From Takakia lepidozioides (Eukaryota > Plantae > Bryophyta), in NCBI GenBank assembly GCA_030704615.1, contig CM060732.1:33046001-33110000 (forward strand): DNA of 64,000 nucleotides. Direction: 5' to 3'. The notes below the pieces were generated by a model, which did not search any database, was not told where the DNA came from, and saw only the letters and a list, made by a program, of their open reading frames with translations. Shown piece after piece: positions 4,388-44,672 of the stretch. The position numbers and the translations under genes are program-made. Position 1 is the first letter of the stretch; the number at the start of each line of letters is the position of its first letter.

Positions 4388-5971
4388 TCAGATCTCATAC
4401 AAGTGTAGTGGCAAGCGAGGCGTAGCGAAGGCAAGCAACGGTTTGAGCTTGGGTGTAGTCAGGCCTTCCCTCTCTTCCATGTCGATGTCTGTAGCACCCT
4501 TCTCAAGCACAGGGGTCCAGTCAAAGCTGTGCAGCAGGCTTGCCAGGGCCAACATGACCATTGTGGTTCCTAGGGATGCACCTGGGCAGCCCCGCCGCCC
4601 AGCACTAAAAGGGATTATTCGCATATCTGCATCTTTGATCTCGACACGCATCTCTGTATCAACAGTGTGATTCTGGATGCCTTCTTCCAACCATCTTTCA
4701 GGTTTGAACACCTCCGCCTCGTCCTTCCATATTTCAGGGTTGCGCCCAAGGCCCCACCCGCTGATGAGGACCTGCGTTCCTTTGGGGATGGCGTAACCTC
4801 CGAGCTCGGTGTCCTCCATAGCCAGGTGCGGTATGACAAATGCCCCAGGGGGGTGCATCCGGAAGGTCTCCTTCACGACGCACTCCAAGTACTTCAGCTT
4901 CCCCAAATCTGACTCCAGGACCATCCGCTCAAGTCCTACCACATGGTCAATTTCATCTTGTACTTTGTGAAGCAGGTTGGGGTGCCTGATCATCTCCGCC
5001 ATAGCCCACTCATTTGTGACGGCAGAGGTGTCGGTTGCTGCTGCTATCATGTCCTGCACCAAGGCCTTCACGGTTGTGTCGCTCAGGTGTTCCTCCCCAG
5101 ACTCGCCTGGCAGGGATAATAAGACGTCTACAAAATCAGTTGAAGAGTCAAGGTCATCCTTCTTCTTTCTGTGTTCTTCAACAATGGAAGTGTGGAATGC
5201 GTCCATGCTTTTCTCCACTTGTATCATCTGCTTCTCATGTCCCCCAAAATCACACCACCTGAGAAAGGGCAGGTAGTCGCCGAGGGGGAAAACACCTAGC
5301 AGCCGAAACACTTCCTGTGTTACTTTTTTGAAATCCTTAGCTTCGCCTGGTCCTGCGTTTCCGGTACCAAAGTATCGCTTTCCCAGTAGCATGCGTGTCA
5401 TGATGTTCATAGACAGTGCTGCCAGCGCCTCCTTGAGATCGGAAGGCTGGTCCCGAGAGGCATCAGTAAAAATAGACTGCACCAAGCAGTGGGCCTCCTC
5501 TATGCGCTCCTTTTTGAAGCCCTCCAGACGTTTTGGAGTCAAGAGCTCCGTCAAACAGATGCGGCGCCCATTTTTCCAGTGATCTCCATAGGGTGCCATT
5601 GCAACATCACCACCACCATAGGCCAAGTGATCCATAGCGATTGTCTTTGGCCTGGATGCAAAGACATGGTCCTTTGTCTTGAGAACTTCCTTACACAGTG
5701 TTGGAGTGTCTATTACAACTGTACCGACTGAGCCCAGGCGCAGAAATATGATGGGTCCGTATTTCCTTTGTAGAGCATAGACGTTACGATGGGGGAGGCG
5801 TCCCAGACTTAGTAGATTGCCAATGATAGGCAGCCTGAGGGGCCCTGGAGGTAGTAGCTTGCCTTTATAGTACCTTCCGAAGAAATGCTCTAGCAGAGTT
5901 GCCAGTAGAAATGCCGGCACAATCACATAGAAGAAGGCTGCCATTACCTTGTCAAGCTGCTCTACTCCCAT
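4388..5971 (-). CDS. CYP703: Cytochrome P450, CYP703 family (fatty-acid in-chain hydroxylase, sporopollenin pathway); single exon, 527 aa
   Basis: N-terminal TM anchor, LPPGP hinge, FASRPKTIAMDHLAYGGGDVAMAP, I-helix MIAAATDTSAVTNEWAMAE, ETFRMHP, PERW and heme motif FSAGRRGCPG. The first two segments closely resemble CYP703A as I recall it. Confidence 0.88.
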   Translation of the reverse strand: MGVEQLDKVMAAFFYVIVPAFLLATLLEHFFGRYYKGKLLPPGPLRLPIIGNLLSLGRLPHRNVYALQRKYGPIIFLRLGSVGTVVIDTPTLCKEVLKTKDHVFASRPKTIAMDHLAYGGGDVAMAPYGDHWKNGRRICLTELLTPKRLEGFKKERIEEAHCLVQSIFTDASRDQPSDLKEALAALSMNIMTRMLLGKRYFGTGNAGPGEAKDFKKVTQEVFRLLGVFPLGDYLPFLRWCDFGGHEKQMIQVEKSMDAFHTSIVEEHRKKKDDLDSSTDFVDVLLSLPGESGEEHLSDTTVKALVQDMIAAATDTSAVTNEWAMAEMIRHPNLLHKVQDEIDHVVGLERMVLESDLGKLKYLECVVKETFRMHPPGAFVIPHLAMEDTELGGYAIPKGTQVLISGWGLGRNPEIWKDEAEVFKPERWLEEGIQNHTVDTEMRVEIKDADMRIIPFSAGRRGCPGASLGTTMVMLALASLLHSFDWTPVLEKGATDIDMEEREGLTTPKLKPLLAFATPRLPLHLYEI

Positions 5972-8900: not shown

Positions 8901-9001
8901 TTTGTCACAGCATGCTGTGATGTAGAAGGTTAATCAGCCTGTATTCTGCTATCTAGGCAAGAGCCTGTCCTCATGACGAGATATATTTTCGGCGAGTATA
9001 G

Positions 9002-11290
9002 TTGGTTGGAATGCACTCTGTGAGTTCAAGGTCTGTATTTGTTACTGAGATTTTTAAGTCATGCAGGGTGGGAGGCTTGAATCAGGCACAGTTGTTTGAA
9101 TCAGACACCCTGACCATGACCACTGCATTTGAAAGAGGACGAGGAGAGAGGGTCAACAAGGACTCTTCTTACACTTGTGGGGATGTGAGGACACTATGTA
9201 AGGCAGGACAGCTGAAAGAGGCACTGCAGATTTTGAACGAAGGAGGTATTTTTCCAGACTCCAATACTTATGCCTGTCTCTTGCAGGAGTGCATCAAGAT
9301 CAAAGGCCTAGCAATTGGAAAGCAAGTGCATGCCCACATTGTTGACCGGGGATGGAAGCCAAACGTCTTTCTACACAACACCCTTATGAACATGTATGCC
9401 AAGTGTGGAAGCCTGGTGGAGGCACGCCTAGTCTTTGACAAAATGCCTGAACGAGATGTGTTTACATATACTACAATGATTGGAGCATATGCCAGGCATG
9501 CGTGTGGTGTGGAGGCTTTTGATATTTATAAGCAAATGACATGGGAAGGGAAGACACCTGACAATGTCACATTCACCTGTGTCCTCAAGGCCTGTGCTAC
9601 CCAGGGAGCCCTGGAGAAGGGCAAAAGTGTCCATGCTGACATCATCAAAGCTGGAATTACGCCAGATATAATTCTGGAGACTGCCCTTGTGGACATGTAT
9701 GCCAAATGTGGGAGCATGAAGGATGCACATCAAGTGTTTGACAAAATGGCTCGGCGAGATGTGGTCTCATGGAGTGCGATGATTGCTAGTTACGCTCAGC
9801 ATGGGCGTGGCAGAGAGGCTTTGGAGACCTATGAGCAAATGATAGAGGATGGTGTGATTCCCAACCAGGTCACATTGGTTTCTGTTCTCAATGCATGTGC
9901 CAGCCTTGTGGCTCTGGACAAAGGCAAAGAGGTCCATGCTGACATCATCAAAGCCAGAATTGAGCCACATATCATGTTGGAGAATGCCCTTATTGACATG
10001 TATGCTAAATGTGGGAGTGGAAAGGATGCATGTCAAGTGTTCGACAATATGGCTCACCGAAATGTGGTCTCATGGAGTGCAATGATTGCTGGATATGCTC
10101 AGCATGGGTGTGGCAGGGAGGCTTTGGAGACCTATGAGCAAATGAAATTGGAAGGGATTAAACCCAACCAGGTCACGTTTGTTTGTGTTTTCAATGCATG
10201 TGCGAGCCTGGCAGCTCTGGAGAAGGGCAAAGAGGTCCATGTTGACATCATCAAAGCCGGAATTGAGCCTAATATCTTTCTAGAGAGTACCCTCGTGGAC
10301 ATGTACTCTAAATGTGGGAGCATGAAGGATGCCCGTCAAGTGTTTGACAACATGGCCAAGCAAGATGTGGTCTCATGGAGTGCGATGATAGCAGGATATG
10401 CTCAGCATGGGTGTGGTAGGGAGGCCCTGCAACTGTTTGAGCAAATGCAACAGAAAAATTTGAAGCCAGACGGTATTACCTTTACATGTCTCCTCTCTGC
10501 TTGTAGCCATGTGGGTCTTCTGGATGAGGGATGTCACTACTTTGCTTCTATGAATCGAGATCATGGCCTGACTCCTGCGGTAGAGCATTTTGGTTGCATG
10601 GTGGACCTTCTTGGCCGTGCAGGGCAATTGAATGAGGCAGAGGACTTCATTAACAACATGCCAATTGAACCAGATGCGTCGACATGGGGAGCTTTGCTTG
10701 GTGCCTGCAGAATTCATGGGAATGTGGAGGTGGCAGAACATGCGGCAAAATGGCTTCTCAAGTGGGATGCCCAACATGCTGCCACTTATGTTCTGCTATC
10801 GAACATCTATGCAGCGGCTGGCAGGTGGGAAGATACTGCAAAGGTGAGGAAAATGATGAAGGACAGAGGGGTTACAAAGGAGCCAGGTCGCTGCTGCATT
10901 GAGGTCGACAACCAGATGCATACATTCCTTGTGGGCGATAAATTGCATCCACGAATTGAAGAAGTAAGTGCTGAACTAAACAGATTGTCTGGGGAGATGA
11001 AGGAGGCCGGGTACATGCCTGACACGCGTTTTGTCTTGCATGATGTGGAGGAGGTGCACAAAGAATTTTCTCTGTGTCACCACAGTGAGAAACTGGCCAT
11101 TGCTTTTGGGCTCATCAGCACTCCACCTGGAACGCCTCTTCAGCTGATCAAGAACCTTCGGGTGTGTGGTGACTGCCACACGGCCACCAAATTCATCACA
11201 AAGATTGTTGGGCGAGCAATTGTTGTACGAGATGCCAACCGCTTTCACCACTTCCAAGATGGTGTTTGTTCGTGTGGAGATTACTGGTGA
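9002..11290 (+). CDS. PLS-class PPR protein with E1/E2 and complete DYW deaminase domain (organellar C-to-U editing factor); true start may be ATG 9116 or an upstream exon
   Basis: Regular L-S-P triplets, then P2-L2-S2, E1/E2, PG box (KEPGRCCIEV), HSEKLA, CGDCH and terminal DYW. Confidence 0.95.
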   Translation: MVGMHSVSSRSVFVTEIFKSCRVGGLNQAQLFESDTLTMTTAFERGRGERVNKDSSYTCGDVRTLCKAGQLKEALQILNEGGIFPDSNTYACLLQECIKIKGLAIGKQVHAHIVDRGWKPNVFLHNTLMNMYAKCGSLVEARLVFDKMPERDVFTYTTMIGAYARHACGVEAFDIYKQMTWEGKTPDNVTFTCVLKACATQGALEKGKSVHADIIKAGITPDIILETALVDMYAKCGSMKDAHQVFDKMARRDVVSWSAMIASYAQHGRGREALETYEQMIEDGVIPNQVTLVSVLNACASLVALDKGKEVHADIIKARIEPHIMLENALIDMYAKCGSGKDACQVFDNMAHRNVVSWSAMIAGYAQHGCGREALETYEQMKLEGIKPNQVTFVCVFNACASLAALEKGKEVHVDIIKAGIEPNIFLESTLVDMYSKCGSMKDARQVFDNMAKQDVVSWSAMIAGYAQHGCGREALQLFEQMQQKNLKPDGITFTCLLSACSHVGLLDEGCHYFASMNRDHGLTPAVEHFGCMVDLLGRAGQLNEAEDFINNMPIEPDASTWGALLGACRIHGNVEVAEHAAKWLLKWDAQHAATYVLLSNIYAAAGRWEDTAKVRKMMKDRGVTKEPGRCCIEVDNQMHTFLVGDKLHPRIEEVSAELNRLSGEMKEAGYMPDTRFVLHDVEEVHKEFSLCHHSEKLAIAFGLISTPPGTPLQLIKNLRVCGDCHTATKFITKIVGRAIVVRDANRFHHFQDGVCSCGDYW

Positions 11291-12829: not shown

Positions 12830-15497
12830 ATGGGGGCATCCGACTGGCAAGATCTGGTGTGGCTGGCAGCAATTGCAACATGTTTGAAGGTGTTACTCGT
12901 ACCCACATACCACAGTACAGACTTTGAGGTTCACCGGCACTGGCTTGCGATAACCCACTCTCTCCCTCTCCAGAATTGGTACAGTGACGAATCCAGTGAG
13001 TGGACTCTGGATTACCCCCCTTTCTTCGCTTTCTTCGAGCGATTCCTCTCTCTATTTGCAGGCGTTGTGGACCCTCAGCTTGTCGAGCTAATCGAAGGAC
13101 AAAACTACGCCAGTGATCGTGCTGTCTTATTTCAGCGGGCCACAGTTATGGCAGCTGATGTGGTCCTCTACTGGGGTCTCTTGGAGATCTGTCGAAATCT
13201 GTCAACAGAAAAGCGTAGGCTGGTTTATGTGGCTGTGATATTCTCACCGGGCCTCTTCATCGTTGATCACATGCATTTCCAATACAACGGATTTTTATTT
13301 GGGATGTTACTGCTGTCTCTCGCAGCGCTGAAAGATGGCCGTGATTTGATTGGGGGTGTCTGGTTCGCAATTCTGGTTTGCTTCAAGCATCTCTTTGCAG
13401 TTGCAGGGCCTGTGTACTTTGTGTATCTGCTAAGGCATCACTGCAGGGGCCCAATGAAGATTTCACGGTTTCTCAGACTGGCAGGGGCTGTTCTTGGTAT
13501 TGTGGCAATTGCATTTGGGCCATTTGCCTATTATGGTCAGGTGATTATCCGCTTTTTGCTTGCACTGTCACAATCAGTTCTTGATTCACCTTCAGAAGCT
13601 TTAAACAATATATAAGGTGTGTATGGTAGTGCAGTGGAGTAAGAGTCAATTGGCTCAGGGATCTGAAGAGCTCAGTATGCCTGGTTCAGAGATTGTACCG
13701 AGCCTCAAGCACACTGCTGAATAGCCAACATTAGAAGGTGCAGTGTGGTCTATGGCGCCATCTCCATACAGCTGCTTCCTACCTACATTCATTGGGCCAA
13801 TGTCTAGATTGCAAAGCAATAAAGGCTTGCTCACTTACTCTTTGGACTTACAGAGTAGCAAGCTCACTAGTGTGATCTGATTTGGTGTAGGTTGTGTTGT
13901 CCATGTGTCTGCCGTTCATGGGTCACGGCAGATTGGCCAAGTGATGAAGCGGCTCTTCCCTTTCGGAAGGGGTCTCTGCCATGCTTACTGGGCCCCTAAC
14001 CTCTGGGCTCTGTACAATGCTGCGGATAAAGTGATCGCATTTTTGCTCCGGATGGTAGGATTCCACATGCAACCCTCCAAGGCAGGCATGACAAGAGGTC
14101 TCGTAGGCGATTTCACTCCATATGCAGTGCTCCCACAGGTGAGTGCCTTGCTGTGAATTCTCTTCACTCACAGTTCTTCTACCATTCTGTTGCATGCATG
14201 GTGCTCAATATACCAATCAAGAATCATCGAGGCCCAACTGGTCTATAGCACATGGGCTTTTTACACTGCATGTTGTGAGCTGCATGCTCTAATTTGGTCT
14301 AACTAAGCTGTTTAGCCTTGGGTGCAGTGCATCTGCTTTCAGTCCTCATGGGCGCTCAAGTTGAGATGATGGAAGCTGACATGATGTAAGCGGCTTGTGT
14401 CACTGTGCTCCAGATCACACCATCAGTATCAGCAGGTCTGGTCCTATTCTCAATGCTGCCATGTCTTGTGCAAATCTGGAGATGGCCAAGGCAGTCAAGC
14501 ATCATTCGATGTGTAGCATACGCATATGCTTGCGGGTTCATGTATGGATGGCATGTCCATGAGAAGGCATCCCTTCACATTGTCATCCCTTTGAGCCTTG
14601 TTGCAGTCGAGAGTCTGGAAGATGCCAGCAATTTTTTCTTGTTGTCGACAGGTGCAGTTTGTTCTCTACTTTTTTGAAAAGAGGCAGAGTTTATGTTTCT
14701 TCTTGTCTGGCATACTAATTTCCCAGGCTTACTTTGAAAATTAGAGTGACCTCCTCCTGCGACAGAGATCCACAAGGAATAGAACGTCTCTCTGGATGAT
14801 TTCAGGGTGCTGATTACAGGAGTCAAAGAGAATTTATCAAGAGCATCCTAGAGACCAGTTATTATATCAGTCTGTCTGCATACTTCTCGGACTCGACCTG
14901 GCTCCTCTCTTGGCTCCGGGGGCAGGGGTCCAACTCTTTTTACAGTTCCTTGTCATGCTGAGCTTCAATACTGGAAACTAGTTTGTTCACCAGATCAACG
15001 TATATATCATGCCCAACTAACACTATTCTCTGATCTGTACTGCAGTTTCATACTACTCGCTCTTCCCCCTCCTTTTTGAAACGAAAGAGTACCCCATCAA
15101 AGTTGTCCTTCTTCTTCTACATACTTTGCTGTTGTGGGTCAGCTTCTCAGCAAGTTTCTGCATCTCTGGCCGACAGGCCACAAAGGAGGCCACAAAGGAG
15201 CCTGACGAAAAAAGGAGAGCTGATCACAGTCCTCAGAAAAGTATAGATCCAGCTGCCAACCTTTGTCATGGGACAGAAGTGAAGAGAGACACCAAAAGAG
15301 AAGGGGAGCTGCTAGGGAGATGTAAACAAACATACCTAGTGGGTCTAATATTCATAGAAGTCTATGGTCAGTTTTTGCACCCGTTTCTGCTCAGAGGTAG
15401 ACTTCCCTTTCTTCCATTGATGCTTATTTCAGTGTACTGTGGGTTAGGGATGCTGTATTTCTGGGCAGGGCAATTGTGTCACATTATTTTTCACTAG
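12830..15497 (+). CDS. ALG8: ALG8 alpha-1,3-glucosyltransferase; exons 12830-13540, 13932-14138, 14414-14651, 15046-15497 (535 aa)
   Basis: YHSTDFEVHRHWLAIT, EWTLDYPPFFA, DHMHFQYNG, RLFPFGRGLCHAYWAPN and WHVHEKA motifs. GT-AG introns keep the frame (1608 nt). Confidence 0.93.
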
Positions 15498-16648
15498 AGC
15501 TGTTGTTTTTTGGAGACTAGTGTGTAGACCCCAGTTCAAGGATTTGGTTTCCAAATTCTCAACAGAATGAGAAGGGGCAGATGCTTTCGAGCAGACCATC
15601 GTTCCTCAACAGTTTTGGTCATTGGTCATTTGGTCATTCTACCTGATAGGAAACACTGAAATCGAATATTCATCTGTGTCAATGAGACCATCGGTGGAAA
15701 ACCCCTTGGTTCATCAGTATATCTGTCTCCTCCTCGGACTTGCCTGTTGGATTTCTGTCTTGTTTTAACTATATGTCCCTACTCCAGAAAATTCTATCGT
15801 CACTGAAGTGACGTAGTATTCAATCTTTCTCTGTATAATAGTTCTTACCTCTGGCTCTGGTTTTCTGTTTCCCCTCATGTTTTTTTTCCATTTTGTCCCC
15901 TAAGCTCTATGAGCTTTCCGTGGACGTTATAAAGCACCATTTCATTTCATTTCATTTCTGTATCCTCAACCACGCCTCATACGTACACACGTTCCTCCGA
16001 CTATAAGACTAGGCCCTAATCTGTGTGTGTCTCTGCTCTCCTTTCACTCTCTGTTTCTTTCTTAGTTCATAGCCCACATATGTGAATACTGGGTGTCACT
16101 CATTATATAGAGCCGCCACAATGTGTGTGCCCCTGCGTTCACAAAACTGCATTAGACTAAGAACGTTTCTCTTCCCTTCTCATTTTTCCGTTTCTTATAA
16201 AGCACCATTTCATTTCATTTCATTTCTTCTCTTTACCCATTTGAAGCAAATTGATTTTCCCCACCCTCGCCATCTCTCTACCGTGGCTCCGCAAACCTTT
16301 TGAGAAGCATTTGCTCCTAGGAAAGATGCATGCCCACATTCCTGCACGTATCAGGAAATCCGAAGTCGGAAATAGCAAAAGCAAACACATACCAAAAGTC
16401 GAGAAAAGATAATAATAGAAAAACGAGAACAGAAAAAGTTGCGGGAAAACTGTATGAATTGCTGTTTCTGCGGCTGTGGCGGAGAGCTTTGCTTGCCATT
16501 GAAACGGAGGAGAGAGCTGTGTAGATTGATCAGGCGAGGGAGCCCAGTTGACAAGAAGAGGTGCAGAGTGTTTTGCTACGGAGGAGGAGGACAAGAAGTA
16601 TAGCTAGTTCTAATCTGCGTATAGACGATCACACAAAGGGAAAGGGTC

Positions 16649-17488
16649 ATGGGTCGGTGTAAGCTGCCCATGCAACTGATAGAGAGGTCTGATTGTAAGA
16701 AAGCTACCTACCTGAAGAGATCGAAAGGATTAGTCAAGAAAGCGAGGGAGTTGTCGACTCTTTGCAATGTTGATTTGGCGGTCATCATGTTCACCCCTGA
16801 AGGAGACCTGACTAAGTTTTGCAATACATCTATGGAAGATGTGATTGCTCGATATGCGAAGATTCCCCAGGAGGAACGTGACAAATACCATGATGAGATG
16901 CTTCAACATGAGGTGCCAAGCGAGCATCAAGACTACACATACGTGGCCAATTACGTGGACCAGCGTGCGGAATGGCAAGAGGTTGTGGACCACTATGACA
17001 ATCTTGAGCAGCCAGGCTCCAACGATTTTATCCTCGTTCTCAAAGCGTGCACCAGTCTCGGGGACCTGCAAATGGGCACGAAGGTACATGTTGACATTGT
17101 GGAAGCTGGGATTGTGCCAGACATCAATTTGGTGAATGCCCTCATAGACATGTATGCTAAATTCGAGAGCGTCGATATGGCTCAGCAAGATACATTGGCT
17201 CTTGATGAGACTAGTATCGATGAGAGAAATCTTGATGACACAACTCTAAACCTCGTGCTGGAGGGCAAAATCCAGAAGCTGGAGGAAGATCTCGACCTGT
17301 CGCAACGATACTCACGGATCCTTGCAGGCGACGAGCTATGGGGATTGGAGCTTCCTGATCTGGAGGGGTTAGAGGCACAATTGGAAGCATCTCTTCGGAA
17401 GGTGCGAGTTCATAAGCGCGACAATAAGAATCCGTATGATACACCGAATTATATGGATTGTACACACGCGGTGCTCATGCAACATTAG
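16649..17488 (+). CDS. Intronless MADS-box gene (MIKC*-like MADS + internal PLS-PPR segment + K-box-like C-terminus), 279 aa; copy 1
   Basis: MADS: MGRCKL...TYLKRSKGLVKKARELSTLCNVDLAVIMFTPEG. PPR L/S: FILVLKACTSLGDLQMGTKVHVDIVEAGIVPDINLVNALIDMYAK. K-box-like: ILAGDELWGLELPDLEGLEAQLEASLRKVR. Confidence 0.88.
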   Translation: MGRCKLPMQLIERSDCKKATYLKRSKGLVKKARELSTLCNVDLAVIMFTPEGDLTKFCNTSMEDVIARYAKIPQEERDKYHDEMLQHEVPSEHQDYTYVANYVDQRAEWQEVVDHYDNLEQPGSNDFILVLKACTSLGDLQMGTKVHVDIVEAGIVPDINLVNALIDMYAKFESVDMAQQDTLALDETSIDERNLDDTTLNLVLEGKIQKLEEDLDLSQRYSRILAGDELWGLELPDLEGLEAQLEASLRKVRVHKRDNKNPYDTPNYMDCTHAVLMQH

Positions 17489-19064
17489 TTTGCTAGCTAG
17501 TTTGCTCCTTATGGAACTGTACATACTCGATCAGCAGTTCTATGCATCATGGGGGACAAGTTACTGTAGAGTATAAATTATATGTCAAACAATATTCAAA
17601 AGTCCCATTAAAGTTGAAACCTTCTTCTCAGTCTGGGTGAGGATTGATCAGCGATAACCTCTTACATGCACTTGTCTTCAGAAATCTCCGTACTTGTTTT
17701 GTTTGTGAAGGTGAGATGTAACTTAGCAAAAAGTGTGATTTTTCATTCTGTTGTTTGAAGTGTGGTGTCCGTGTGACCGTTTGAGACTTTATTGTGCTAT
17801 GGAGACAATGACCATGCAATTAGAGACGAAAGGCAGTCTTCCAATCGAACTCAATCCACCATAAAAACCATGGGCTCTAGTGTGCAACAAGTTTGTAAAA
17901 ATTGCTCGGTTTGCATCGCACATGGGGATTACGACCAGGCTTATACATGGGACTCGCTATCGTGAAGTTCAGTGTCCTTTTTTGGTCGAGGATTTGAGAA
18001 GATAAGGTGCCTTCTGTACAGCTATATTGAGATTAAGGAGACGGTTCTCTTTTCTTGCATCAGGAAGCTGTAGTTCAATGCTGATTTTTGCTCACCTGTG
18101 GGCGAGGGGTCTGCTATGGGTTGTCAGATAATTCCTTGCAATCTATGAAATCTCGAGGCTAAGCCCCACGTACAAATTACATTATGGGCTATGTGTGTCC
18201 TTGGGGTATTGCTCTTGTAGTTCCCTTCAGTGTGGCAATCTGCATTTGCAGATCCGGTCCCAGGCAAATCGAAAGCAAAAGACCTTTCTGTGTGTTGCCT
18301 ATGCGTGCTTCAAATCCCTTCATTTCTGACAGTGTGATGTCCATGTCCTTCTGGAGTCTCATCTCTTGTTCCTGAGTTTGAAGCGTGCGGCCAACCCACA
18401 GTTTTTGGGGCAGTCTCTCTAAAAGTGTAGCACTGCGGAGGAAAAGCGAGAAGACACAGAGCGCGGAGCAGACTGTGACGGATACTCCAGCGCTTTCCCC
18501 ACCACACCCCAGTTCCATACCCGGTGATAAATCCTGTATCTCAACATATGGCTCTTTTTTATCTTCGTGGCAGAGCCGCGGGAAAGCTTAGAGACACCAG
18601 ATAACTCACAGCGGGATATACAAGGGAATTTCAAGGGATAACAAGTAAAAGGGAAGTGGTGTTAAGCTCAAGCTAGGAGCCCCACGGGTCAACTTTCGAG
18701 TTCTCAACTTACCCACCAACTAAATTTCTGACTCTCTATGCTGATGAGCCTGCAAGTGAGAAAGGGCCGGAAGACAGCCATCATAAGACCTTACTAAGGT
18801 GGAGAAGAAATACACATTGATTGTCCACCCAACACAGCAGGCTCTTGATCTGAATTGGGATCCAAGCGTCCCTGTGCATGAGCCAGCAGTAACAGATGCT
18901 CTTCACTGTGTCAACAATGCTACTTGTTCTGACCCTGAAAGTCTCAATACAATCACTTGCGAAGGAACAGACGTCAGATCCCTCTAGAAGAACATGACAC
19001 CAAAGCTTCAACACCAAAAAATTCGCAGAATTATTAGCAGCAGCCTGGAAATAAGGTAATAAAG

Positions 19065-22000
19065 TCACCGGGCCTTCCCTCCAAATATTTCATCGTCAGT
19101 CCACACACGATCAAGGCGCTCATAGTCTGCTTTGGGATCAAAGCCTGCATCTCGCATACGGTCAACTGACTTCCTCATGTCCTCGTCGGCCCCACCCTTC
19201 TCATAAGCATCCACTATTATCTGGTATGTTTCAGCTGTAGGAGTCACATTTGCATCCCGCAACTCTTGAAATGTCTGCTCCATCGTATCAAACTGCCTCC
19301 CTTTTCCATATTCCGAAATCAACTTGTTGTAGATGTTTACCTGGAAAATCCAGCCACTCCCCTTCACCACTTCCATAGCCTTCTTTAGCCGATCATAGGC
19401 ACCGCTCTTAGCGTACGCAGTTATAATGGACTCCAGAGTTCTTGGGGTTGCAAACATCCGCTTGTTCTGAAACATACGCTGAATGGAGGTGTCCATTGCA
19501 TCGAGTTGACCGGCATCAGCGTAACTCTCTATCACCATACTGTGGACACGGGAACCGTATTGGACCCCTATCACACATTCAGAAAGCCAAAAATCTTGTT
19601 ATGATTGGTCAGAAGATAGCAGCAGACCTAGCCATGGACAGTGTCAAAGAGGGTTAAAAAGGGGAGCTAAGCAAGAATCACGCAGAAGAGGAATTGTGTG
19701 TCCTAACATGTACTGAATAAGGCTCTGCTTGCAATGGCCAGTGCCCGGGGTAGAACAAGGGCAGAGGGGAGAGTAGATGCAGGGAGCCTGCAAAATGAAC
19801 AGGGGCACCATGAGTAGCCGGAACCCATTCATTTTCAGGGATTATTGGCAACCAGTTGGTGTACTTGGGATTGCCTGCAATTAGTGGGAGACATGCCCCT
19901 GGTAACTTCACAAATCATGACCACTACAGTCTTAACCAGAACTTTTAAAACCTCTGGGATACCCAGCATCGCATTAAACAAAGAATGAGACTGACCTGGT
20001 GTATCATCCATTATCTTAAGAGTCTCTTCCATCCGGTCAAATTTCAGTGTCCGACTATACACCTCCACTAAGATCTCCCCAACCATTGCATTTATCGGGA
20101 TCCCTGCCCTTTGCATGCTTGTGAATGCTGCTTGCATCTTGTCAACATCATTCACTCGCGCGTACCCAATGATCTGAGCGTTGTAGGTGATGACATCAGG
20201 CGTGCATTCGCCAGCTTCTAACTCATTGAATGTCTCTTCCATTTGGACCAGCTGTCCAGCACGCATGTAGCCCCATATGAGGGCATTGTATGTGTGCCTG
20301 TCAGGACTAAACCCTGCCTCCTTACAAGCCTCAAATATCTTTTTCATTTCTTGAGTCACACCCAATCGACTGTACATGGAAATTAGAGTGTTATAGGTTA
20401 CCAAGGTGGGCTGGCAATCCTGTGTGGCCTTCATATCCTCAAACAGAGAAAGGGCCCGTTGGGCGTCATCGTTACGGCCGTATGCATGGATAAGGGCATT
20501 ATAGGTTACAGCAGTTTTCTTAACACCCTTCTTCTCCATCTCATGGAACAGATCTGTGGCCACCTGGAGCTGGCTCACCCTGCCTGCAAAAGATATCATT
20601 TTTGCATACTCCTTGGGGTTTGCCTCACACCCCAATTTGTTCCTCTTCCAGTTGAACACCTGTCACATGAATCAGTCTGTTAGCACTGGACAACTCCAGT
20701 GTCTATAACTTCATCATCTCCTGACATTGGATTTTGCATAAAATAAGAATGAAAGGTGATAAACATGGGCATATGTTTTTACCAGTTTCCTTGTATTGAG
20801 TTTCAGCCATGATTTTGGCTACTACATGAGGAAGAGCTAAACAATATTTCAATAGGATTTTTCTTCATAGAGGCAAAAAAAGCTTATGAAGCCAAATACC
20901 GACATCTCATTTTAGCTTTGTCTCTAGCTCATCTCTAGGCATAAAAAACCATAGCTTAGGGGCCTCCTGAACCCAGAACATCCACTATAGTATCCAATCA
21001 TCCATTTAACTGCAGAGTAGACTCCAGAGTTGAATTTGAAAGGTAACCAGTGAAAACTCCATAACTACACATACAGACAGCAATGAAAAGTAGTGTGATT
21101 ATAATCAATTAAACTGCCATCAGGATTTCACATCCCCCTACCTCCATGGCAAGCTGAGGCCTGGGACCTTTCTGCAGGGCGTCTAAAAGTAGCAGCCATG
21201 GCCAGTTAAGCAAATGTTCAGACCGCTGCTCGAGTATCTGTTCAACGTCATGAGTCGTCTCTGCACCTTCCAACACATTCACCAGAGCGGCAACCACTGT
21301 ATTAGACCTTGATCGTGCATACCTGTCGCCTCCTTTTCTTCTAAATGGAATTATTGGGCTCTCTTGCGCCAACTGCAACTCTCCCTCTCCTGCACACAGC
21401 AAACCATTCTGAGAGCATGAAACGTCTGTGTCCATAATACACAGCATCCGAAATATGTTTCCAAAAAGGTGTTTACACTAATCCCACAACTTTGAGTTCG
21501 CCATTAGGAATTGGGCTTATTTAGCGTACATTACGTGTACACTAGATCAACTTGCTGATAAAGACAATATCTCGATCTTTGAAAGATTCACAACAGATTA
21601 CCAGATGTGTCTAGAATTGGATGATCTGTAAATCCTAGCACAAGGAACTCCCTTGAGCTAACTTTGCTCTAAAGATGACCGTTAAGCAACAGGATTAAAA
21701 TGACCAAAACATAAATTGAAGCCACTTCCCGTTCCAGCTGAATAAGTAAATTCTATAGAAATACCCGATTCGGCACAGAGATTGGGGGAGCTATGGGGCA
21801 CCAATGATCTACTCTAGAACCGGGAATAATGATGCCCCCATACAGTTCTATCTGGAAATCACCTAAGAAATCCTACAACAATCTTCAAGAATGATCCTAC
21901 TTTTGATTGTACTGCTTCCAGGGTTAATGGATTCGGACGTTCAAATATGGTGTTAAGGTGCAGCAATTTGCAAGTTTCAGCCCTTGAAGATGTCAGCAAC

Positions 22001-26269: not shown

Positions 26270-27083
26270 TGTAATAGTGTGCTGAAGCCAGCGCTTGGGC
26301 GTGTGCGCTGTGTAAACTTTGGGTTGTCATTGTCAGCCATCTGCGGCGAGCGTGAGGGTATTTTCATTTTTATTGTGATGGAGGATAGGCTGAGAGTGTG
26401 GGTGCAGATCAATCCCAGAGGATCAGAGTTCAAGCACAAGAATACCAAGGAGGCAATGTGGACTCCTAGCTACAAGAAACCTGCATGGGTAGATGGTCAA
26501 TCAGAGAACCTGGACCAGCTAGGAAAAATTCTCTGGCGAGCCCTGGTGGAGGGGGGTCGTTGGGGCACTATGATAGTCCCTTCTCTTCTACAGATACAGA
26601 ATTGATGGACTTAAGGGTCTTTCCTTGGTAATTGCATGAGATGTTTTTCTGAGTGCTCTCATGATGGTTTTCATTCCCTCCATTGCTTACCCCCAGGAGC
26701 AGAGGTTCCAACAGACAAAAGTTATGTCTCTGCCTTGTAGAAATAGTGTAGGAAAATTGTGCGTTAGGTGCATAGGAGGCTATAAGCAGGTGGATTGTAC
26801 ACAGATGTTTTGTGTTGTAACTCTTCTCTTAGTCTGAAGGTGAATATGGTTGTTAGAAGTGGTTCTTGGTAGTTCGTGTAAGGGGACAATAATAGTATTG
26901 CAGCTGGCGTCCAACTTGGTATACTCCTGCAATGTGTGAAGGTTAACCAAAGCCAAGAAAAACCCTGTTGATATGTAGCAAGGAGCCTGTCCTCATGAAG
27001 AGATCTTTCTTTGGATATGTGGGAGCTTTGAGATATGTTCTGTGAGTTTGAGTGCCAAATTTTCTAACTAGGAATTCTGAGTC

Positions 27084-29519
27084 ATGCAGGAGTCCAGCGA
27101 TGAATCACGCATAGTGGTTGAACCAGGCATCCCCACTATGGTCACTCCTTTTCAAAGAGGACCAAGAGAGGCTTTGAACGAGAACCCTCCAGGCACTCAT
27201 GGCGATGTTGGGAAACTATGTAAGGCAGGACAATGGAAAGAGGCACTGCACATTTTGAATCAGGGATGCATCTTGGCAGACCACGATACATATGTTTGTC
27301 TCTTGAAGGAGTGTATCAAGATAAAAAGCCTAGCAGATGGAAAGCAGGTGCATGCCCACATCATCAAAACTGGATTCAAGTCGAACACCCTTCTACTAAG
27401 GACCCTTGTTGACATGTATGCTAAGTGCGGAAGGTTGGTGGATGCACGTTTAGTGTTTGACAACATGCCTGAACGAGATGTGATTACTTGGACGATAATG
27501 GTAGGTGGATATGCAAAGCAGGGATGTGGAAGAGAGGCCTTACAAATCTTTGAGCAAATGATAAGGGAAGGGGTGACACCGAACAAGGTCACATTCATTT
27601 GTGCTCTGAAGGCATGTGGCAGTGTAGGAGCCCTGGTAAAGGGCAAAGAGATCCATGCTAACATTATTAAAGCTGGACTTGCACCAGATACCATTCTGGA
27701 GACTGCCCTTGCTGCCATGTATGCCAACTGTGGGAGCATGAAGGATGCCCAAAGAGTGTTCGACACTATGTCTCAACGAAATGTTGTCTCATGGAATGTG
27801 ATGATTGGAGGATATACTCGGAATCAGTGTGGTACGGAGGCTTTCAAGATTTATGAAAAAATGATACAGGAAGGGGTGATAGCCGATAAGGTCACATTCA
27901 TTTGTGTTCTGAATGCATGTGCCAGCCTTGAAGCCCTGGAAAAGGGTAAAGAGGTCCATTCTAATATCATCAAAGCTAGAGTTGCTCCAGATATCATACT
28001 GGAGAATACCATCATTGCCATGTATGCCAAATGTGGGAGCATCAATGATGCACGCCAAGTGTTCACCAATATGGTTAAGCGAGATGTGGTGTCGTGGAAT
28101 GCAATGATAGCAGGACATGCTCAGCATGGGTTCAGTAGAGAGGCTTTAAATATGTATGAACAGATGAGACAGGAAGGGGTCATGCCTGACAAGGTCACAT
28201 TCATTTGCATTATCAATGTATGTGCCAGACTGGCAGCCCTGGAGAAGGGTAAAGAGGTCCATGCTGTCATCCTCAAAGTTGGAATTGCACCAGATATCAT
28301 TCTGGAGACTGCACTTGTCGACATGTATGCCAAATGCAGGAACATGAAGGATGCGCATCAAGTCTTTGACTCTATGGCAGAATGGAATGTGGTCTCATGG
28401 AATGCAATGATAGCAGGATATGCTCAGCATGGTTGTATTGGGGAGGCCCTCCAACTATTTGAACAAATGCAACAGGAAGGCTTCAAACCAAATGTCGTCT
28501 CATGGAGCGCGATGATCACAGGATATGCTCGGCATGGGTTTGGTACGGAGGCTGTTGAGATGTATGAACAAATGATAAAGGGTGGCGTGGAGCCTGACAA
28601 GGTCACGTTCATTTGCATTCTCAGTGCATGTGCCAGCCTGGCAGCCCTGGAAAAGGGGAAAGAGGTCCATATGGACATCATGAAAGCTGGAATTGCATCC
28701 TATATAAATTTGGAGAACAGCCTTGTTGACATGTATGCAAAATGTGGGAGCGTAGAAGAAGCACGTCAAGTGTTCAACAATATGGCTCACCGAAATGTGG
28801 TCTCATGGAATGTGATGATTGCAGGATATGGCCAGCAAGGGTGTGGTTGGGAGGCCCTCCAACTATTTGAACAAATGCAACAGGAAGGCTTGAAGCCGAA
28901 CTGTATCACCTTTATATGTCTTCTCTCTACATGTAGCCATTTGGGCCTAGTGTCAGAAGGCCGACACTACTTTGATTCCATGATGCAAGATCATGGCCTC
29001 ACTCCAACTGTGGAGCATTTTGGCTGTATGGTAGACCTTCTTGGCCGTGCAGGACGGTTGGATGAGGCAGAGGACTTCATTAGCAATATGCCAATTAAAC
29101 CAGGTCCTTCAGTGTGGGGGGCATTGCTTGGTGCATGCAGAGCTCATGGTGAGGTTGCGATAGGAGAACGTGCAGCAAAATGCCTTCTCCTGTGGGATCC
29201 ACTGCATGCTCCAACGTATGTGCTGCTATCAAACATCTATGCTGCAGCCGGAAGATGGGATGATACAGCAAAGGTGAGAAAATTGATGCAGGACAGAGCT
29301 GTCATAAAGGATCCAGGTCGCATAAGGAAGCCGAGCGGCACCGACATTCAGCTACAAAAGAGGTACTCATCAAGTAGTCACAAGATATGTGTACCAAATT
29401 TCTATGAGATAGAATTGTGTGCAGTCATTTCTTCTCTATCACTTCTCCGATCGTTGTTCTCTTACAAGCTGCCAACCTTCAGCACCCAAAGTGATGCAAG
29501 ATTAGTCATTTTACTTTAA
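27084..29519 (+). CDS. PLS-class PPR paralog truncated at the PG box (no DYW) with a foreign ~65-aa C-terminus; E-class-like gene or pseudogene
   Basis: PLS array plus E1/E2 ends at KDPGR (29321). The rest of the ORF reads into sequence matching the reverse complement of the FG-GAP gene. Confidence 0.85.
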   Translation: MQESSDESRIVVEPGIPTMVTPFQRGPREALNENPPGTHGDVGKLCKAGQWKEALHILNQGCILADHDTYVCLLKECIKIKSLADGKQVHAHIIKTGFKSNTLLLRTLVDMYAKCGRLVDARLVFDNMPERDVITWTIMVGGYAKQGCGREALQIFEQMIREGVTPNKVTFICALKACGSVGALVKGKEIHANIIKAGLAPDTILETALAAMYANCGSMKDAQRVFDTMSQRNVVSWNVMIGGYTRNQCGTEAFKIYEKMIQEGVIADKVTFICVLNACASLEALEKGKEVHSNIIKARVAPDIILENTIIAMYAKCGSINDARQVFTNMVKRDVVSWNAMIAGHAQHGFSREALNMYEQMRQEGVMPDKVTFICIINVCARLAALEKGKEVHAVILKVGIAPDIILETALVDMYAKCRNMKDAHQVFDSMAEWNVVSWNAMIAGYAQHGCIGEALQLFEQMQQEGFKPNVVSWSAMITGYARHGFGTEAVEMYEQMIKGGVEPDKVTFICILSACASLAALEKGKEVHMDIMKAGIASYINLENSLVDMYAKCGSVEEARQVFNNMAHRNVVSWNVMIAGYGQQGCGWEALQLFEQMQQEGLKPNCITFICLLSTCSHLGLVSEGRHYFDSMMQDHGLTPTVEHFGCMVDLLGRAGRLDEAEDFISNMPIKPGPSVWGALLGACRAHGEVAIGERAAKCLLLWDPLHAPTYVLLSNIYAAAGRWDDTAKVRKLMQDRAVIKDPGRIRKPSGTDIQLQKRYSSSSHKICVPNFYEIELCAVISSLSLLRSLFSYKLPTFSTQSDARLVILL

Positions 29520-38479: not shown

Positions 38480-38960
38480 TGAATGAATGAATGGATGAAT
38501 GAATGATTAGGATGAATGTGCTCGAATTTAGGGTTGTTAGGTCGCGTTAAGTATGAAGACAATAAGTAGTAAAAATGTTTAACTACTATTTCACTGACCC
38601 AGCAGATTAACAGTAAAACTAATCGACTGCTGGTTAAGGTTAGTGAAACAAAACAACTGTATTATCTCAACGAATGATATACAAATGTCTTGCTGGCAAC
38701 TATTGGATGAACGTATCAAACATAACTTTTGTGCACTGGATGAACGTATGAACGAATGATACAACAAACGTCTTGCTGGCAACTATTGGATGAACGGATG
38801 AACGAATGATAGTGCAAACGTTGAACAGCAATTGGATGAACTGACAGTGAAACTCATTTAAAGATTTATTTTGGATGAATGGATGAAATTAAGATGGCCA
38901 AAAAATGGAAAAACAAATGAATGGATGGATGTATTGATGGAAAACCCAAAATCCATCCAT
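38480..38960. repeat. TGAA/GGATGAA-rich low-complexity and short tandem repeats
   Basis: gaatgaatgaatggatgaatgaatg, and repeated gtcttgctggcaactattggatgaacg (~38687 and ~38770). Confidence 0.7.
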
Positions 38961-39375
38961 CTATCGAGGATCTAATTTGCATTAGAAAAATTCTATAGAT
39001 TTTTGGTCAGGTCCAAAAAACTAAATGGTCTAAGTGAGTAGATTTCCCCTTTCTGCAGCTATCCCCCCAAAAACTGCATCAAACGGAGCTCATTTGACAA
39101 AGATATGACCAACCAGGCTCTTTAATCATAACACCCTTTTAAAAAAATAAACAAATACAAGGGAAAATCTATTTTCAATAACTTGTCTTGGTTCCCTATT
39201 CCCTAGTTCCCTAAGAATTCCCTAGACTCATGCCTGGCTCATATCTAAAAAATAACGATCTTAGATTCTTAACTCAATCGCTCCACAGTGGAATTACCAT
39301 GATAAAGGTAATGTCTTCTCATCCATCCAGTCATGAGTAGAGGGGACTTAGCGTTTTTTTGTCTCCCCTGCCATC

Positions 39376-39537
39376 TGTTTGTTTTCTTTGTGTCGAGTTT
39401 GATCGTGAGAGACGACAATCAGGACAGAATTGTGTTTGCTTTCTTTTAGTGTCGAGTCTGATCATGAGAGACGTCAAACAGGGCAGAGCTATGTTTGTTT
39501 TGTTTTAGGGTCGAGTCTGATCATGAGAGACGACGAG
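39376..39537. repeat. Tandem repeat, ~59-bp period, about 3 copies
   Basis: gtcgagt(t/c)tgatc(g/a)tgagagacg at 39392, 39451 and 39510. Confidence 0.85.
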
Positions 39538-40592: not shown

Positions 40593-40889
40593 TATATACA
40601 CCAAAAGTCGTGAAAAGAAAAAAGAAAAATCCAAAAATAGCAAAAAGCAAATACCAAAGTTGAGGATAGAAAAAAAAGATAAAAATAGAAAGTGGAAAAA
40701 AAAAAATTGTGCTAAGACTTTTCAGACACTTATAAATGGCTTATCATACTTGGCACTAAAAACGGAGGAAAATCCTCTATAAATTGAGAGGAGACCAACT
40801 GACATGAAGAGGTCCATAGTATTTTGATGCGGAGGAGGACAAGAAGTAGAGCTAGCTGTCGTCCACATATAAGACATAAGGAAAGGGTC

Positions 40890-41591
40890 ATGGGTCGACG
40901 TAAGTTGCCCATACAACTGATAGAGAGACTAGATTGTAGGAAAGCGACCTACCTCAAGAGATCGAAAGGATTAGTCAAGAAAGCGATGGAGTTGTCAACT
41001 CTTTGTAATATTGATGTGGCGATCATCATGTTCACTCCTGAAGGAAATCTGACTAAGTTTTGCAATATCTCTATGGAAGAGGTGATCGCTCGATATACGG
41101 AGATTCCCAAGGACAAACGTGACAAAGATTATGAGGAGATGGTTAAACATCGATTGTCAAGCAAGCTTCAAGAGTTCCCATACAAAGCCAATTACGTGGA
41201 TCAACATGCGGAATTGCAAGAGGTTGTGGACCACTATGAGAATCTTCAACAGCCATGCTTCAATGATTTTATCCTTGTTCTTAAAGCGTGCACTAGTCTC
41301 GGGGACCTACAAACGGGCAAGAAGGTACATGCTGACATTGTGGAAGCTGGAATTCTGCCAGACATCAATTTGGTGAAGGCCCTCATCGACATGTATGCCA
41401 TATTCGAGAGCGTCAGTATGGCTCAACAATATACAATGACTCTTGCTGAGACGAGTAATATAAACAAGAGAAATCTTGATGAGACAAGTCTAAACCTCGT
41501 ACTAGAAGACAAGAACGAGAAGTTGGAGCAAGATCTCGACCTCTCACAGGGTGATTGCAAGCTAAAGTGGGCCAAAAAAGACATATCATGA
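40890..41591 (+). CDS. Intronless MADS-PPR gene, copy 2 (233 aa from MGRRKL); K-box-like region truncated
   Basis: Colinear with copy 1 from the 5' leader to DLDLSQ (~41548), then unrelated sequence and a stop. Confidence 0.8.
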   Translation: MGRRKLPIQLIERLDCRKATYLKRSKGLVKKAMELSTLCNIDVAIIMFTPEGNLTKFCNISMEEVIARYTEIPKDKRDKDYEEMVKHRLSSKLQEFPYKANYVDQHAELQEVVDHYENLQQPCFNDFILVLKACTSLGDLQTGKKVHADIVEAGILPDINLVKALIDMYAIFESVSMAQQYTMTLAETSNINKRNLDETSLNLVLEDKNEKLEQDLDLSQGDCKLKWAKKDIS

Positions 41592-42755: not shown

Positions 42756-44672
42756 ATATATATATATATATATATAAAGAGGGCCCTGGATTTTTTATTG
42801 AGAACAAGGAAAAAAAAAAAAAAAAAAAAAGCACTGTCCCTTGTTTTAAAATAAACTAATAATAATAAGGAGGGGAGGGAAACCCTCACAAAAGGAAAAA
42901 TAATACCCTGATGGACCATAAAGACACAACAAGAACATGAGGGATGAACCGAGAGAGAGACCATCCCGTGGGATGAGAACCATCCAGTTGGATGAAAACA
43001 CTATTTCCGACTTTTAGTCGTAATATCGATATGGAAGAGGGGAAAGAAACGTATGCACTATATGGTAGTGTAGAGCTAAAAAACCATGTGTGTTTGACGC
43101 CATCAAATATATTCGAGAGAGCCTTCATCTATCATCTTCACCAATAGTTTGGGAAACAATTAATAGGTACATTCTCGGGCGCGATGCTAAAATTCGACAA
43201 GGTGAAGCAGGGTCCACGATATTTTGAATGAATAGTCATGTACAGAAGAGCCACTGGAATCTGGATCTTAATATCACATATGTTGATCGTTTTAGCGAAG
43301 CAGTTATTAATCAAGAACCAAGAACCGTACATTCCTATGTACATGTGAACCCTGATGTTTTTATCGCTTGACCTATGCTGCTGAGTTTTATATGGAAAAT
43401 TTGTATCTATCGCGGTTACTCTCATCGCTTTATATGATGTCGTCTTTGCGGTTCAGAATTTTGGAAGATAGTGAAGTGAATACATTGCAGTTCTAAATTT
43501 TGGCAGTATCACAATTGATACATGGGAATTAGGGATGGATGCATCTTTCCTACGAGCAAAATGCTATGAGAGAGATGGCGCGGGTGGGGTAAATAAATTT
43601 TCCTCAAATGGGTAAAGGGAAGAGAATCGTTCTTAGTTAGTATAATGCAGTTTTGTGAACGCAGGGGCACACATGTTGTGGTCGCTCTATCACAGCACCA
43701 CCAAGGTAGCAAATACCACTGTGCCAGTGCTTGTGTGGCTGCAGGGCTGGTAAGTCTGTCTATTGCCTTCTCTCTTGATTGTGGAATAAGCTGCGTGAAA
43801 GAAAGTGATTGCAAACTCGCACATTGCTGTGGTATGTGCAGTGTTGAAATTGCTAGTTACAGCATGGTCTTTCTCTTTCTCTCTCTTTCTGAGCCTGCAA
43901 CCACAAGTGCTGCTCTGAAATCCTCCAAGATTCCTCCAACTACTCGTTCAATTGGCTAGTTCGGGCTTGTTATGGGGAGAATTCAGATTTGCTCACCATT
44001 GGGACACCTTGCTAAGAGAGGAAATCAACAGCAAAGTGCCAGTCTACGAAGGTGGAGGAATAATGACCACATCTCTCAGATGTCTCTTTTGCAATTATAA
44101 CTATAATATGGAGTGCACAGTGGATCGAGAGCACAAATTAGGGACAGAATTTGTGTCAAAAAAAGGTTTAAAACACTGTCTCTTGCAGCAGCAAGCATAT
44201 ATTAAGACGTCTCATTACCCTTTCAGGGGCTTTTCGTTGAAGGTGGAAACCTTCTAATATGGGGGCTGTAACGAGGGCAACAAGGTACACTTGTGTGCCT
44301 CTATGCAAAACCAGGGGCACATACAAACAATTCACAGACATATGGTTCCAAGATGTTCCACTATTAAATTTCTCAATTTGCAGTGCCACCAATGGGATAG
44401 ACAAAACAAATCCAGTTTTGAGCCTGCAGTGATTCTAGTGTTACCTAGGCATTTTTATTATCTAGAGGAAGTCGACCAAAAAGCCCTTCACGAAGTATCC
44501 CTACATGCTCTTTGTTGTATGGATTACAATCTCAGGTGTTTCACTCTCCGTGGACTCACGCGTCACTAAGCAATGTTACTGAACTCCTGATGAATACTAG
44601 ATTACTCAAAGTGATCAGTGATCAGACCAGTCACAGACAGAAGACTGCAAATGGTACCTGAGTATTTGACTC

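Follow-up and report, generated by a model that had tools for sequence, protein, structure and literature searches.

A MADS-type gene that carries a piece of a pentatricopeptide repeat (PPR) protein in its middle was found in a 64,000-nucleotide stretch of the genome of the bryophyte Takakia lepidozioides (NCBI GenBank assembly GCA_030704615.1, contig CM060732.1, positions 33,046,001 to 33,110,000, forward strand; this whole stretch is called the window, and all coordinates below are its own). The gene, referred to as copy A, is an intact, intronless open reading frame (ORF) at 16649-17488 on the + strand, in which a MADS domain, an I region, a PLS-type PPR piece and a K-box follow one another in one frame; a truncated paralog, copy B, is located at 40760-41591 on the same strand. 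The two copies represent a lineage-specific chimeric family, and it is probable from sequence comparisons that this MADS-PPR-K gene is, or recently was, a functional coding gene.

Copy A appears in the ORF list as a single uninterrupted frame of 279 amino acids (aa) plus stop, exactly as a first-pass annotation made from the letters alone had described it, and there are no Ns in the window. That annotation had also placed a MADS domain at about aa 1-60 and a K-box-like coiled coil behind the PPR part, both of which are recovered above the Pfam cut-offs. The MADS domain (aa 1-60, 16649-16828) is divergent and keeps the main basic residues: R3, K5, K23, R24, K30 and K31 are invariant in alignment A2. 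It is matched by SRF-TF (PF00319) at aa 11-57 (E 2.9e-16, 59 bits against a cut-off of 26), and phmmer comparison with chains of solved structure shows matches of the MEF2 and SEP3 MADS chains to aa 1-79 (E 1e-10 to 8e-9). The I region (aa 61-95, 16829-16933) is of MIKC* type, aligning with the second exon of moss and liverwort MIKC* genes plus a moss-type extension. The PPR-derived piece covers aa 96-180 (16934-17188), with a certain core at aa 122-180 (17012-17188), and is followed by an acidic linker and the start of the first K helix (aa 181-205, 17189-17263), recognised from alignment with MIKC* K-region exons and from a modelled helix at 197-226. The K-box (aa 206-257, 17264-17419), which consists of two long amphipathic helices, is supported by Pfam (PF01486, E 1.5e-9, 38.3 bits against a cut-off of 30), by predicted helices and dimer contacts, and by the solved K-domain of SEP3 (4ox0), which matches aa 202-255 with E 3.4e-4; the Pfam match spans only profile positions 13-64 of 93. 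The protein ends with a tail of 22 residues past the K-box and the stop codon (17420-17488), without the long C-terminal domain of MIKC* proteins. A putative 5' untranslated region (UTR) or proximal promoter (16502-16648, + strand) is common to copy B, being 77% identical to 40760-40889 (K = 0.28).

The PPR-derived piece is the part that a domain scan of the ORF, as proposed by the first-pass annotation, does not return together with SRF-TF and the K-box. Whether given the whole ORF or only the piece, the Pfam profiles PPR (PF01535) and PPR_3 (PF13812) score 12-16 bits, where 25 would be required, and no Pfam PPR profile matches copy B at all; therefore, a routine InterPro-style scan would not call PPR. 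The absence of a PPR profile match, which that annotation had counted as evidence against its own proposal, is thus true to the letter, whereas homology is evident from other searches. In BLASTP, aa 96-180 are 42-46% identical to the PLS ORFs of the window at 9002-11290 and 27084-29519 (E ~1e-15). Among solved chains, phmmer matches the piece to the synthetic PPR-DYW protein 9kfx (E 2e-29), the designer PLS9-PPR 5iww (E 2e-27) and a PLS3-PPR (E 3e-8), and a word search of the whole copy A ORF against 5.8 billion proteins returned PPR proteins only, the best with E 8e-9. Aligned with seven P-L-S units of the window, the piece starts with helix two of a P motif, lacks 4 aa where P meets L, and goes on with an entire L motif and roughly two-thirds of an S motif; each column of aa ~99-180 finds its counterpart in these units, at 42-50% identity. 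The likeness extends to DNA, with 74% identity over 127 nt to 9884-10010 and 70% over 105 nt to 10217-10321 (blastn). Both the decayed P, L and partial S layout and the DNA-level resemblance to the neighbouring PLS genes had been noticed at first pass, and both hold. As judged by these sequence comparisons, the PLS-PPR homology of aa 96-180 is unambiguous and beyond doubt, despite the sub-threshold Pfam scores.

Like the PLS-class RNA-editing factors (PLS-E and PLS-DYW), the piece shows P-L-S alignment, a predicted helical-hairpin fold and matches to designer chains. Compared to those factors, in which arrays comprise ~10-20 motifs, the chimera has ~2.5 motifs, of which P lacks its first helix and S its end, and it falls below the Pfam PPR thresholds. 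It also carries no E or DYW domain, neither of which has a match in copy A, and no N-terminal targeting peptide, because the N-terminus is the MADS domain. The chimera contains PPR-derived sequence but is not a PPR protein functionally. The neighbouring DYW gene (9002-11290) is a candidate donor that could not be singled out as the specific one: it gives the best DNA match in a comparison that covered the window only, yet it is no closer to the piece than the two PLS paralogs are to each other.

The remainder of the protein points to a MIKC* ancestor. An exhaustive HMMER search of 1.84 billion protein representatives with aa 1-95 yielded 5,174 MADS matches, none above 56% identity. The best continuous matches over MADS and I are MIKC* proteins of Funaria, Sphagnum, Physcomitrium (AGL66-like) and Riccia, at 53-56% identity, compared with ~45% for a MIKCc-type protein; one row scores higher, a sweet-potato AGL61-like protein (95 bits), with 39% identity and a match in two stretches. 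By such pairwise matches rather than by a tree, the MADS and I part groups with bryophyte MIKC* proteins, in keeping with the MIKC*-like linker reported at first pass. A 5-mer word search with the same residues gave no matches, the MADS domain sharing too few 5-mers with other proteins.

The exon structure of the relatives allows the position of the foreign piece to be specified. Residues 1-60 of copy A correspond to exon 1 (MADS) of the Riccia MIKC* gene, and residues 61-79, with a moss-type extension to ~aa 95, to exon 2; from ~aa 200 onwards, the later K exons are represented in order. Between them, the PPR piece stands where the K-domain would start with its short first exons, whose ENLEYL...KALRKL stretch is unrecognisable in copy A. 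Hence the insert is not inside the I region, as had been supposed at first pass, but after it. The first K helix, which is the dimerisation interface, is lengthened in MIKC* genes by these first K exons, a duplicated pair that is diagnostic of the class (PMC10152394); the N-terminally extended K-domain that arises from this duplicated short exon pair (PMC10152394) is not recognisable in copy A. The remaining K part scores 46 bits with CgMADS1 of Chara, versus 30 bits with the MIKC* relatives, which fits the loss of the MIKC*-specific extension. Over 17219-17422, this K-box tail matches charophyte CgMADS1 and other short MADS-K proteins at 46-34 bits and moss MIKC* at 30 bits.

Compared to bryophyte MIKC* genes, then, the chimera shares the MADS domain, the I-region motif, later K exons recognisable in order, and a predicted dimer through MADS/I and K helices. 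In contrast to those genes, which have from 8 to at least 10 exons and encode 305-416 aa with long C-terminal regions, it is intronless, has the PPR piece in place of the first K exons, lacks the long C-terminal domain and has a MADS domain altered at conserved positions. The chimera derives from, and would work like, a MIKC* MADS factor, but three marks of that class are missing from it: the longer start of the K-domain, the C-domain and the exon structure. The Sphagnum relative's gene has 8 exons in 4.1 kb and that of Riccia at least 10 exons in 3.35 kb; since copy A is uninterrupted over the same regions, its intronless state is derived. A processed (retro)copy, or else wholesale intron loss, would be the natural origin of such an ORF, as we infer from this comparison. 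Neither a poly(A) remnant nor target-site duplications are visible in the flanks, where decay is possible at dS ~0.3. Of the retrocopy with a captured PPR fragment envisaged at first pass, the contrast between an intronless gene and intron-rich relatives is confirmed, and retroposition itself is the simplest proposed route to that state. No further C-terminal or parental exons are detectable within the window.

Copy B provides a second view of the same fusion. It comprises the 5' flank, MADS, I, the PPR piece (41175-41429) and the K start (40760-41591, + strand, from blastn, tblastn and alignment), and its ORF runs from an ATG at 40890 to a stop at 41591, encoding 233 aa; SRF-TF matches it with E 2e-17. 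The copies are 85% identical in DNA over 659 nt (blastn) and 74.5% identical in protein over aa 1-219 (tblastn), and changes at several normally conserved MADS positions are common to both. Both junctions around the PPR piece are identical in the two copies, from which it follows that the fusion predates the duplication and that the chimera is no assembly artefact. The homologous stretch runs from 16502 (= 40760), 147 bp before the ATG, to 17304 (= 41548), past which copy B continues for 14 codons to its stop. No Pfam K-box match is found in copy B, and the rest of its K-box is undetectable anywhere in the window. Copy B departs from copy A at CAG/GTGATT, a sequence resembling a splice donor (41540-41560 versus 17300-17345; the slash marks the would-be splice point), and weak similarity resumes past a 21-nt gap after this break. 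That copy B might keep an ancestral intron here was considered and set aside: the exon 6/7 boundary mapped from Riccia and Sphagnum falls 3 codons further on, weak homology is still seen past the break, and the window contains no K exon further downstream.

The duplication involved more than the chimeric gene. A PLS-E-E+-DYW PPR gene (9002-11290, + strand), identified by the Pfam profiles PPR, E, E+ and DYW and shown by blastn to contain the DNA that best matches the insert, is the upstream gene of block A, and a paralogous PLS-E PPR gene (27084-29519, + strand; Pfam, 76-79% DNA identity to 8947-10891) is the upstream member of block B. The PLS pair (8947-10891 versus 26969-29321) is 76-79% identical and the MADS-PPR-K pair (16502-17304 versus 40760-41548) 82-85% identical, with the same order and orientation, and the intergenic DNA between the paired genes is no longer alignable between the blocks. 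On these alignments, the simplest history would be a tandem duplication of a block containing PLS-PPR and MADS-PPR-K, later padded by insertions.

The codon-level comparison of the copies shows the PPR piece to have been translated and under moderate protein-level purifying selection since the duplication. By the NG86 method, the ratio of nonsynonymous to synonymous substitution (dN/dS) between A and B is 0.35 overall, 0.23 in the MADS domain, 0.32 in the PPR piece and 0.22 at the K start; the I region, with 18 of 35 aa identical, is the fastest-evolving part and has a ratio of 1.4 based on small counts. Values from LWL85, YN00 and maximum likelihood are 0.44-0.49 overall (0.49 with YN00 and maximum likelihood) and 0.37-0.53 for the PPR piece, and those for the MADS domain are 0.23-0.35 across methods. 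Because transition bias distorts NG86, a neutral simulation with the observed substitution number and transition/transversion ratio, conditioned on the absence of stop codons, was used. Its null median is 0.72, and the observed ratios have P = 0.0027 for the full comparison and P = 0.019 within the PPR piece. These simulated P values are relied on, as Fisher tests on NG86 counts overstate significance when the neutral null is 0.72 and not 1.

Other features of the alignment are in agreement. Differences between the copies are in excess at third codon positions (P = 0.007), the chance that 97 neutral substitutions would leave no stop codon is 0.045, and the only coding indel in 657 coding nt is of 3 nt and in frame; three indels (7, 3 and 7 nt) fall in the 147-nt 5' flank, where K = 0.28. 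Conservation of the PPR piece equals that of the MADS domain, with 69 of 85 residues identical versus 50 of 60. When derived changes were polarised with outgroups, 13 fell to copy A and 11 to copy B, so that neither copy decays faster in the part that both have. Neutral dN/dS, which the first-pass annotation had named together with lack of expression as grounds for abandoning its proposal, is not what was found: leaving the expression half apart, constraint is present, and the PPR piece is included in it.

A three-module structure was predicted by AlphaFold2 on alignment A3, with a mean pLDDT of 72.5 and a pTM of 0.39. The PPR piece is the most confident region (pLDDT 90-95), with predicted helices at 105-116, 124-137, 140-153, 159-171 and 175-189, and the two K helices are predicted at 197-226 and 235-259 (pLDDT 86-93); as PPR repeats are contained in both the alignment and the AlphaFold training data, the confident fold shows likeness only. 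A Foldseek comparison of the whole model with the PDB gave weak partial matches only, to MEF2, the SEP3 MADS domain and designer PLS-PPR (E 1e-3 to 2e-2), which is normal for three modules modelled at this pTM; the comparison by sequence was more informative. The homodimer model scored 0.55 versus 0.01 for the best control, with contact agreement of at least 48% and a partner pLDDT of at least 56 across runs. The mark applied was reached by 21 of 30 proteins solved as same-chain pairs and by 0 of 23 single chains and, among eukaryotes, by 17 of 29 pairs (1 of 7 without an older solved relative) and 0 of 30 single chains. Confident contacts occur only at aa 17-80 and 196-260 and are symmetric in K, which leaves the PPR piece outside both interfaces. 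The suggestion made at first pass that the piece alters dimerisation or acts as a spacer fits this predicted dimer. The pass may be a memory of solved MADS and K-domain dimers, and it is a sign of likeness preserved in the model, not proof that the chimera binds.

Several observations weigh against a functional gene, the two limits just given for the models being among them. No listed RNA run contains the stretch. Contigs from two small runs of the same species, which are guessed to be RNA, were compared with 3,001 letters; they leave the ORF uncovered except for a depth of 1-4 at 17011-17212, where copy B is 87% identical to copy A and the depth could be paralog-derived. A perfect contig match at 18729-18900 indicates that the organism is present in run X2; the coverage of these runs counts neither for nor against expression. 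Furthermore, the MADS domain shows unusual divergence in places that are normally conserved, such as the RQVT stretch, no C-terminal domain was found after the K-box in copy A, and copy B is truncated, with most of its K-box lost. An omega of ~0.5 is relaxed for a transcription factor and also compatible with past constraint followed by decay. The same architecture was not found outside the Takakia genome, either in the protein collections searched, which are without the host's own proteome, or in the literature searched. Exact look-ups recovered none of the window's proteins, the P450 and the PPR proteins included, so that the chimera's absence from the collection carries no information on annotation.

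Among the alternatives, the one with most weight is that the two copies are a chimeric processed pseudogene pair, in which an accidental fusion at retroposition or repair, perhaps under constraint for a time or simply fortunate, has left two sequences that make no functional protein today. The missing RNA support, the relaxed omega, the divergent MADS domain, the absent C-terminal domain and the reduced K-box of copy B are all expected on this view, and most plant chimeric retrocopies are not functional. However, the simulation rejects strictly neutral evolution of the copies after they duplicated (P = 0.003 for the whole comparison, 0.02 for the PPR piece), copy A is intact, the one indel in coding sequence keeps the frame, stop codons would have been avoided by chance with a probability of 0.045, and similar numbers of derived changes have accumulated in both lineages. 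We regard a pseudogene pair as unlikely on balance, but as an explanation to be taken seriously.

A mosaic carried by a transposon, through capture of the Pack-MULE, Helitron or LTR type with an ORF that is open only incidentally, is improbable. It could account for pieces of two gene families joined without introns in at least two copies within the window, and for high-copy repeat fragments that lie ~0.4-0.7 kb upstream of copy A and, inverted, ~2 kb downstream of copy B. Against this, no terminal inverted or long terminal direct repeats (TIRs or LTRs) are found within ~3 kb of either copy, and homology between the copies is limited to the gene and 147 bp upstream. That the adjacent PLS-PPR genes were duplicated too, with order and orientation kept, points to segmental tandem duplication, and protein-level constraint is not expected of passenger fragments.

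Even less probability, hardly more than a slight chance, attaches to the PPR piece being an unrecognised or alternatively spliced intron whose removal would leave an ordinary short MIKC protein. GT and AG dinucleotides that permit in-frame removal exist, but the signals are poor: the best donors agree with 4-5 of 8 consensus positions, no pyrimidine tract is present, and the donor-like GAG/GTG at 16913 of copy A is not conserved in copy B. The piece has a GC content of 0.50, above the 0.42-0.43 of its flanks, shows no indels between the copies and evolves with a dN/dS of 0.32-0.53 (P = 0.019). Judged by codon constraint, GC content and poor splice signals, the piece is not a disguised intron, and the worry raised at first pass that it might be spliced out finds no plausible in-frame intron in the sequence. 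An assembly or sequencing chimera of a MADS gene and a PPR gene has practically no standing, as two copies that are 15% diverged and 24 kb apart have both junctions in common and the window has no Ns.

Returning to a gene that is or recently was functional, a plausible course of events can be outlined. A MIKC*-type MADS-box gene would have lost all its introns, most simply via retroposition of a spliced mRNA, and a P-L-S fragment of ~85 aa from a PLS-class PPR gene would have been acquired in frame after the I region. The fragment would occupy the place of the first K-domain exons, that is, the MIKC*-specific N-terminal extension of K helix 1, and the long C-terminal domain would be missing from the product. 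The fused gene would then have been duplicated with the adjacent PLS-PPR gene, copy A remaining complete and copy B losing most of its K-box. As for the protein, a dimer may bind CArG-type DNA through MADS/I and pair a second time through the two K helices, with a five-helix PPR module looping out of each chain between the two interfaces. The module would most likely serve as a rigid spacer or as a new TPR-like surface for protein contacts; ~2.5 motifs are, by analogy, too few for PPR-style sequence-specific reading of RNA. Lacking an activation domain, the protein would be more likely to modulate canonical MIKC* dimers, or to compete with them, than to activate genes, and copy B, with MADS, I and PPR only, would modulate canonical complexes even more. 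The strongest version of this proposal, an expressed functional subfamily in which a domesticated PLS-PPR module replaces the extension of K helix 1 and offers a new surface to a protein partner or RNA, is in our estimation rather doubtful on the sequence data.

MADS-box and PPR genes are among the largest and best-studied plant gene families, and their products act in different compartments on different nucleic acids. The first-pass annotation knew of no described MADS-PPR fusion, and none was found described in the literature searched or present in the protein collections. PPR-like sequence is absent from the 150 best MADS representatives (blastp E above 3), and the ESM Atlas returned PPR clusters only, at 0.77, which is under the level that counts, with no MADS-PPR fusion. 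Two known kinds of gene bear some likeness to the chimera. Plant chimeric retrogenes are likewise intronless copies from an intron-rich family that have taken up sequence of an unrelated gene and then come under some constraint; the recruited sequence is more usually a flanking exon at one end, whereas here the foreign piece is internal and in frame between two parental domains. Truncated or C-domain-less MADS proteins compete in MADS dimers and are usually splice isoforms of canonical genes. Copy A resembles them in lacking a C-terminal domain, and copy B in lacking most of the K-box and keeping MADS and I, but the chimera is a separate intronless gene with a foreign helical module.

If the chimera is expressed, it would indicate that a PPR tri-motif can persist as an independently folding module in an unrelated protein and be kept by selection, and it would represent a natural MADS variant in which the dimerisation-determining K start has been swapped for a foreign helical bundle. 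Should a functional subfamily be confirmed, it would provide the first case of a PPR-derived module recruited to a nuclear DNA-binding factor, and a natural experiment on how a MADS domain can take up a foreign helical domain, as it must once have done with the K-domain. That earlier recruitment has been attributed to "a yet unknown mechanism" (PMC10152394). If the chimera is not expressed, it would still be a clean, datable case of an in-frame chimeric retrocopy followed by segmental duplication.

The window is unusually rich in PPR genes. In addition to the PLS genes described above, two adjacent ORFs of 169 and 274 aa at 19065-20659 on the - strand give strong P-type PPR matches and are probably one PPR gene broken by a stop codon or frameshift or by an intron, as judged from their sequence. 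Two other coding sequences were recognised. An intronless cytochrome P450 of 527 aa (4388-5971, - strand) is an orthologue of CYP703A2, the lauric-acid hydroxylase of sporopollenin synthesis; all plants among the best matches, which include seed plants and a fern, are 51-57% identical to it, and the collection contains nothing closer. A 261-aa ORF at 12830-13615 (+ strand) covers the first half of an ALG6/ALG8 glucosyltransferase (profile positions 1-235 of 482) and could be a first large exon or a fragment.

Repeats occur close to both chimeric copies. The high-copy element located 0.4-0.7 kb upstream of copy A contains a perfect 33-nt direct repeat (15927-15959 and 16195-16227, 268 bp apart), and an inverted copy of the element is found at 43569-43690, ~2 kb downstream of copy B. 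The element is covered very deeply by contigs of both same-species runs, with a summed depth of up to ~8,800, and it is probably a short dispersed repeat resembling a SINE or MITE. Finally, short tandem arrays with a 59-nt unit in three copies (39370-39534) and with units of 50-85 nt (38681-38906) are situated 1.4-2.2 kb upstream of copy B.

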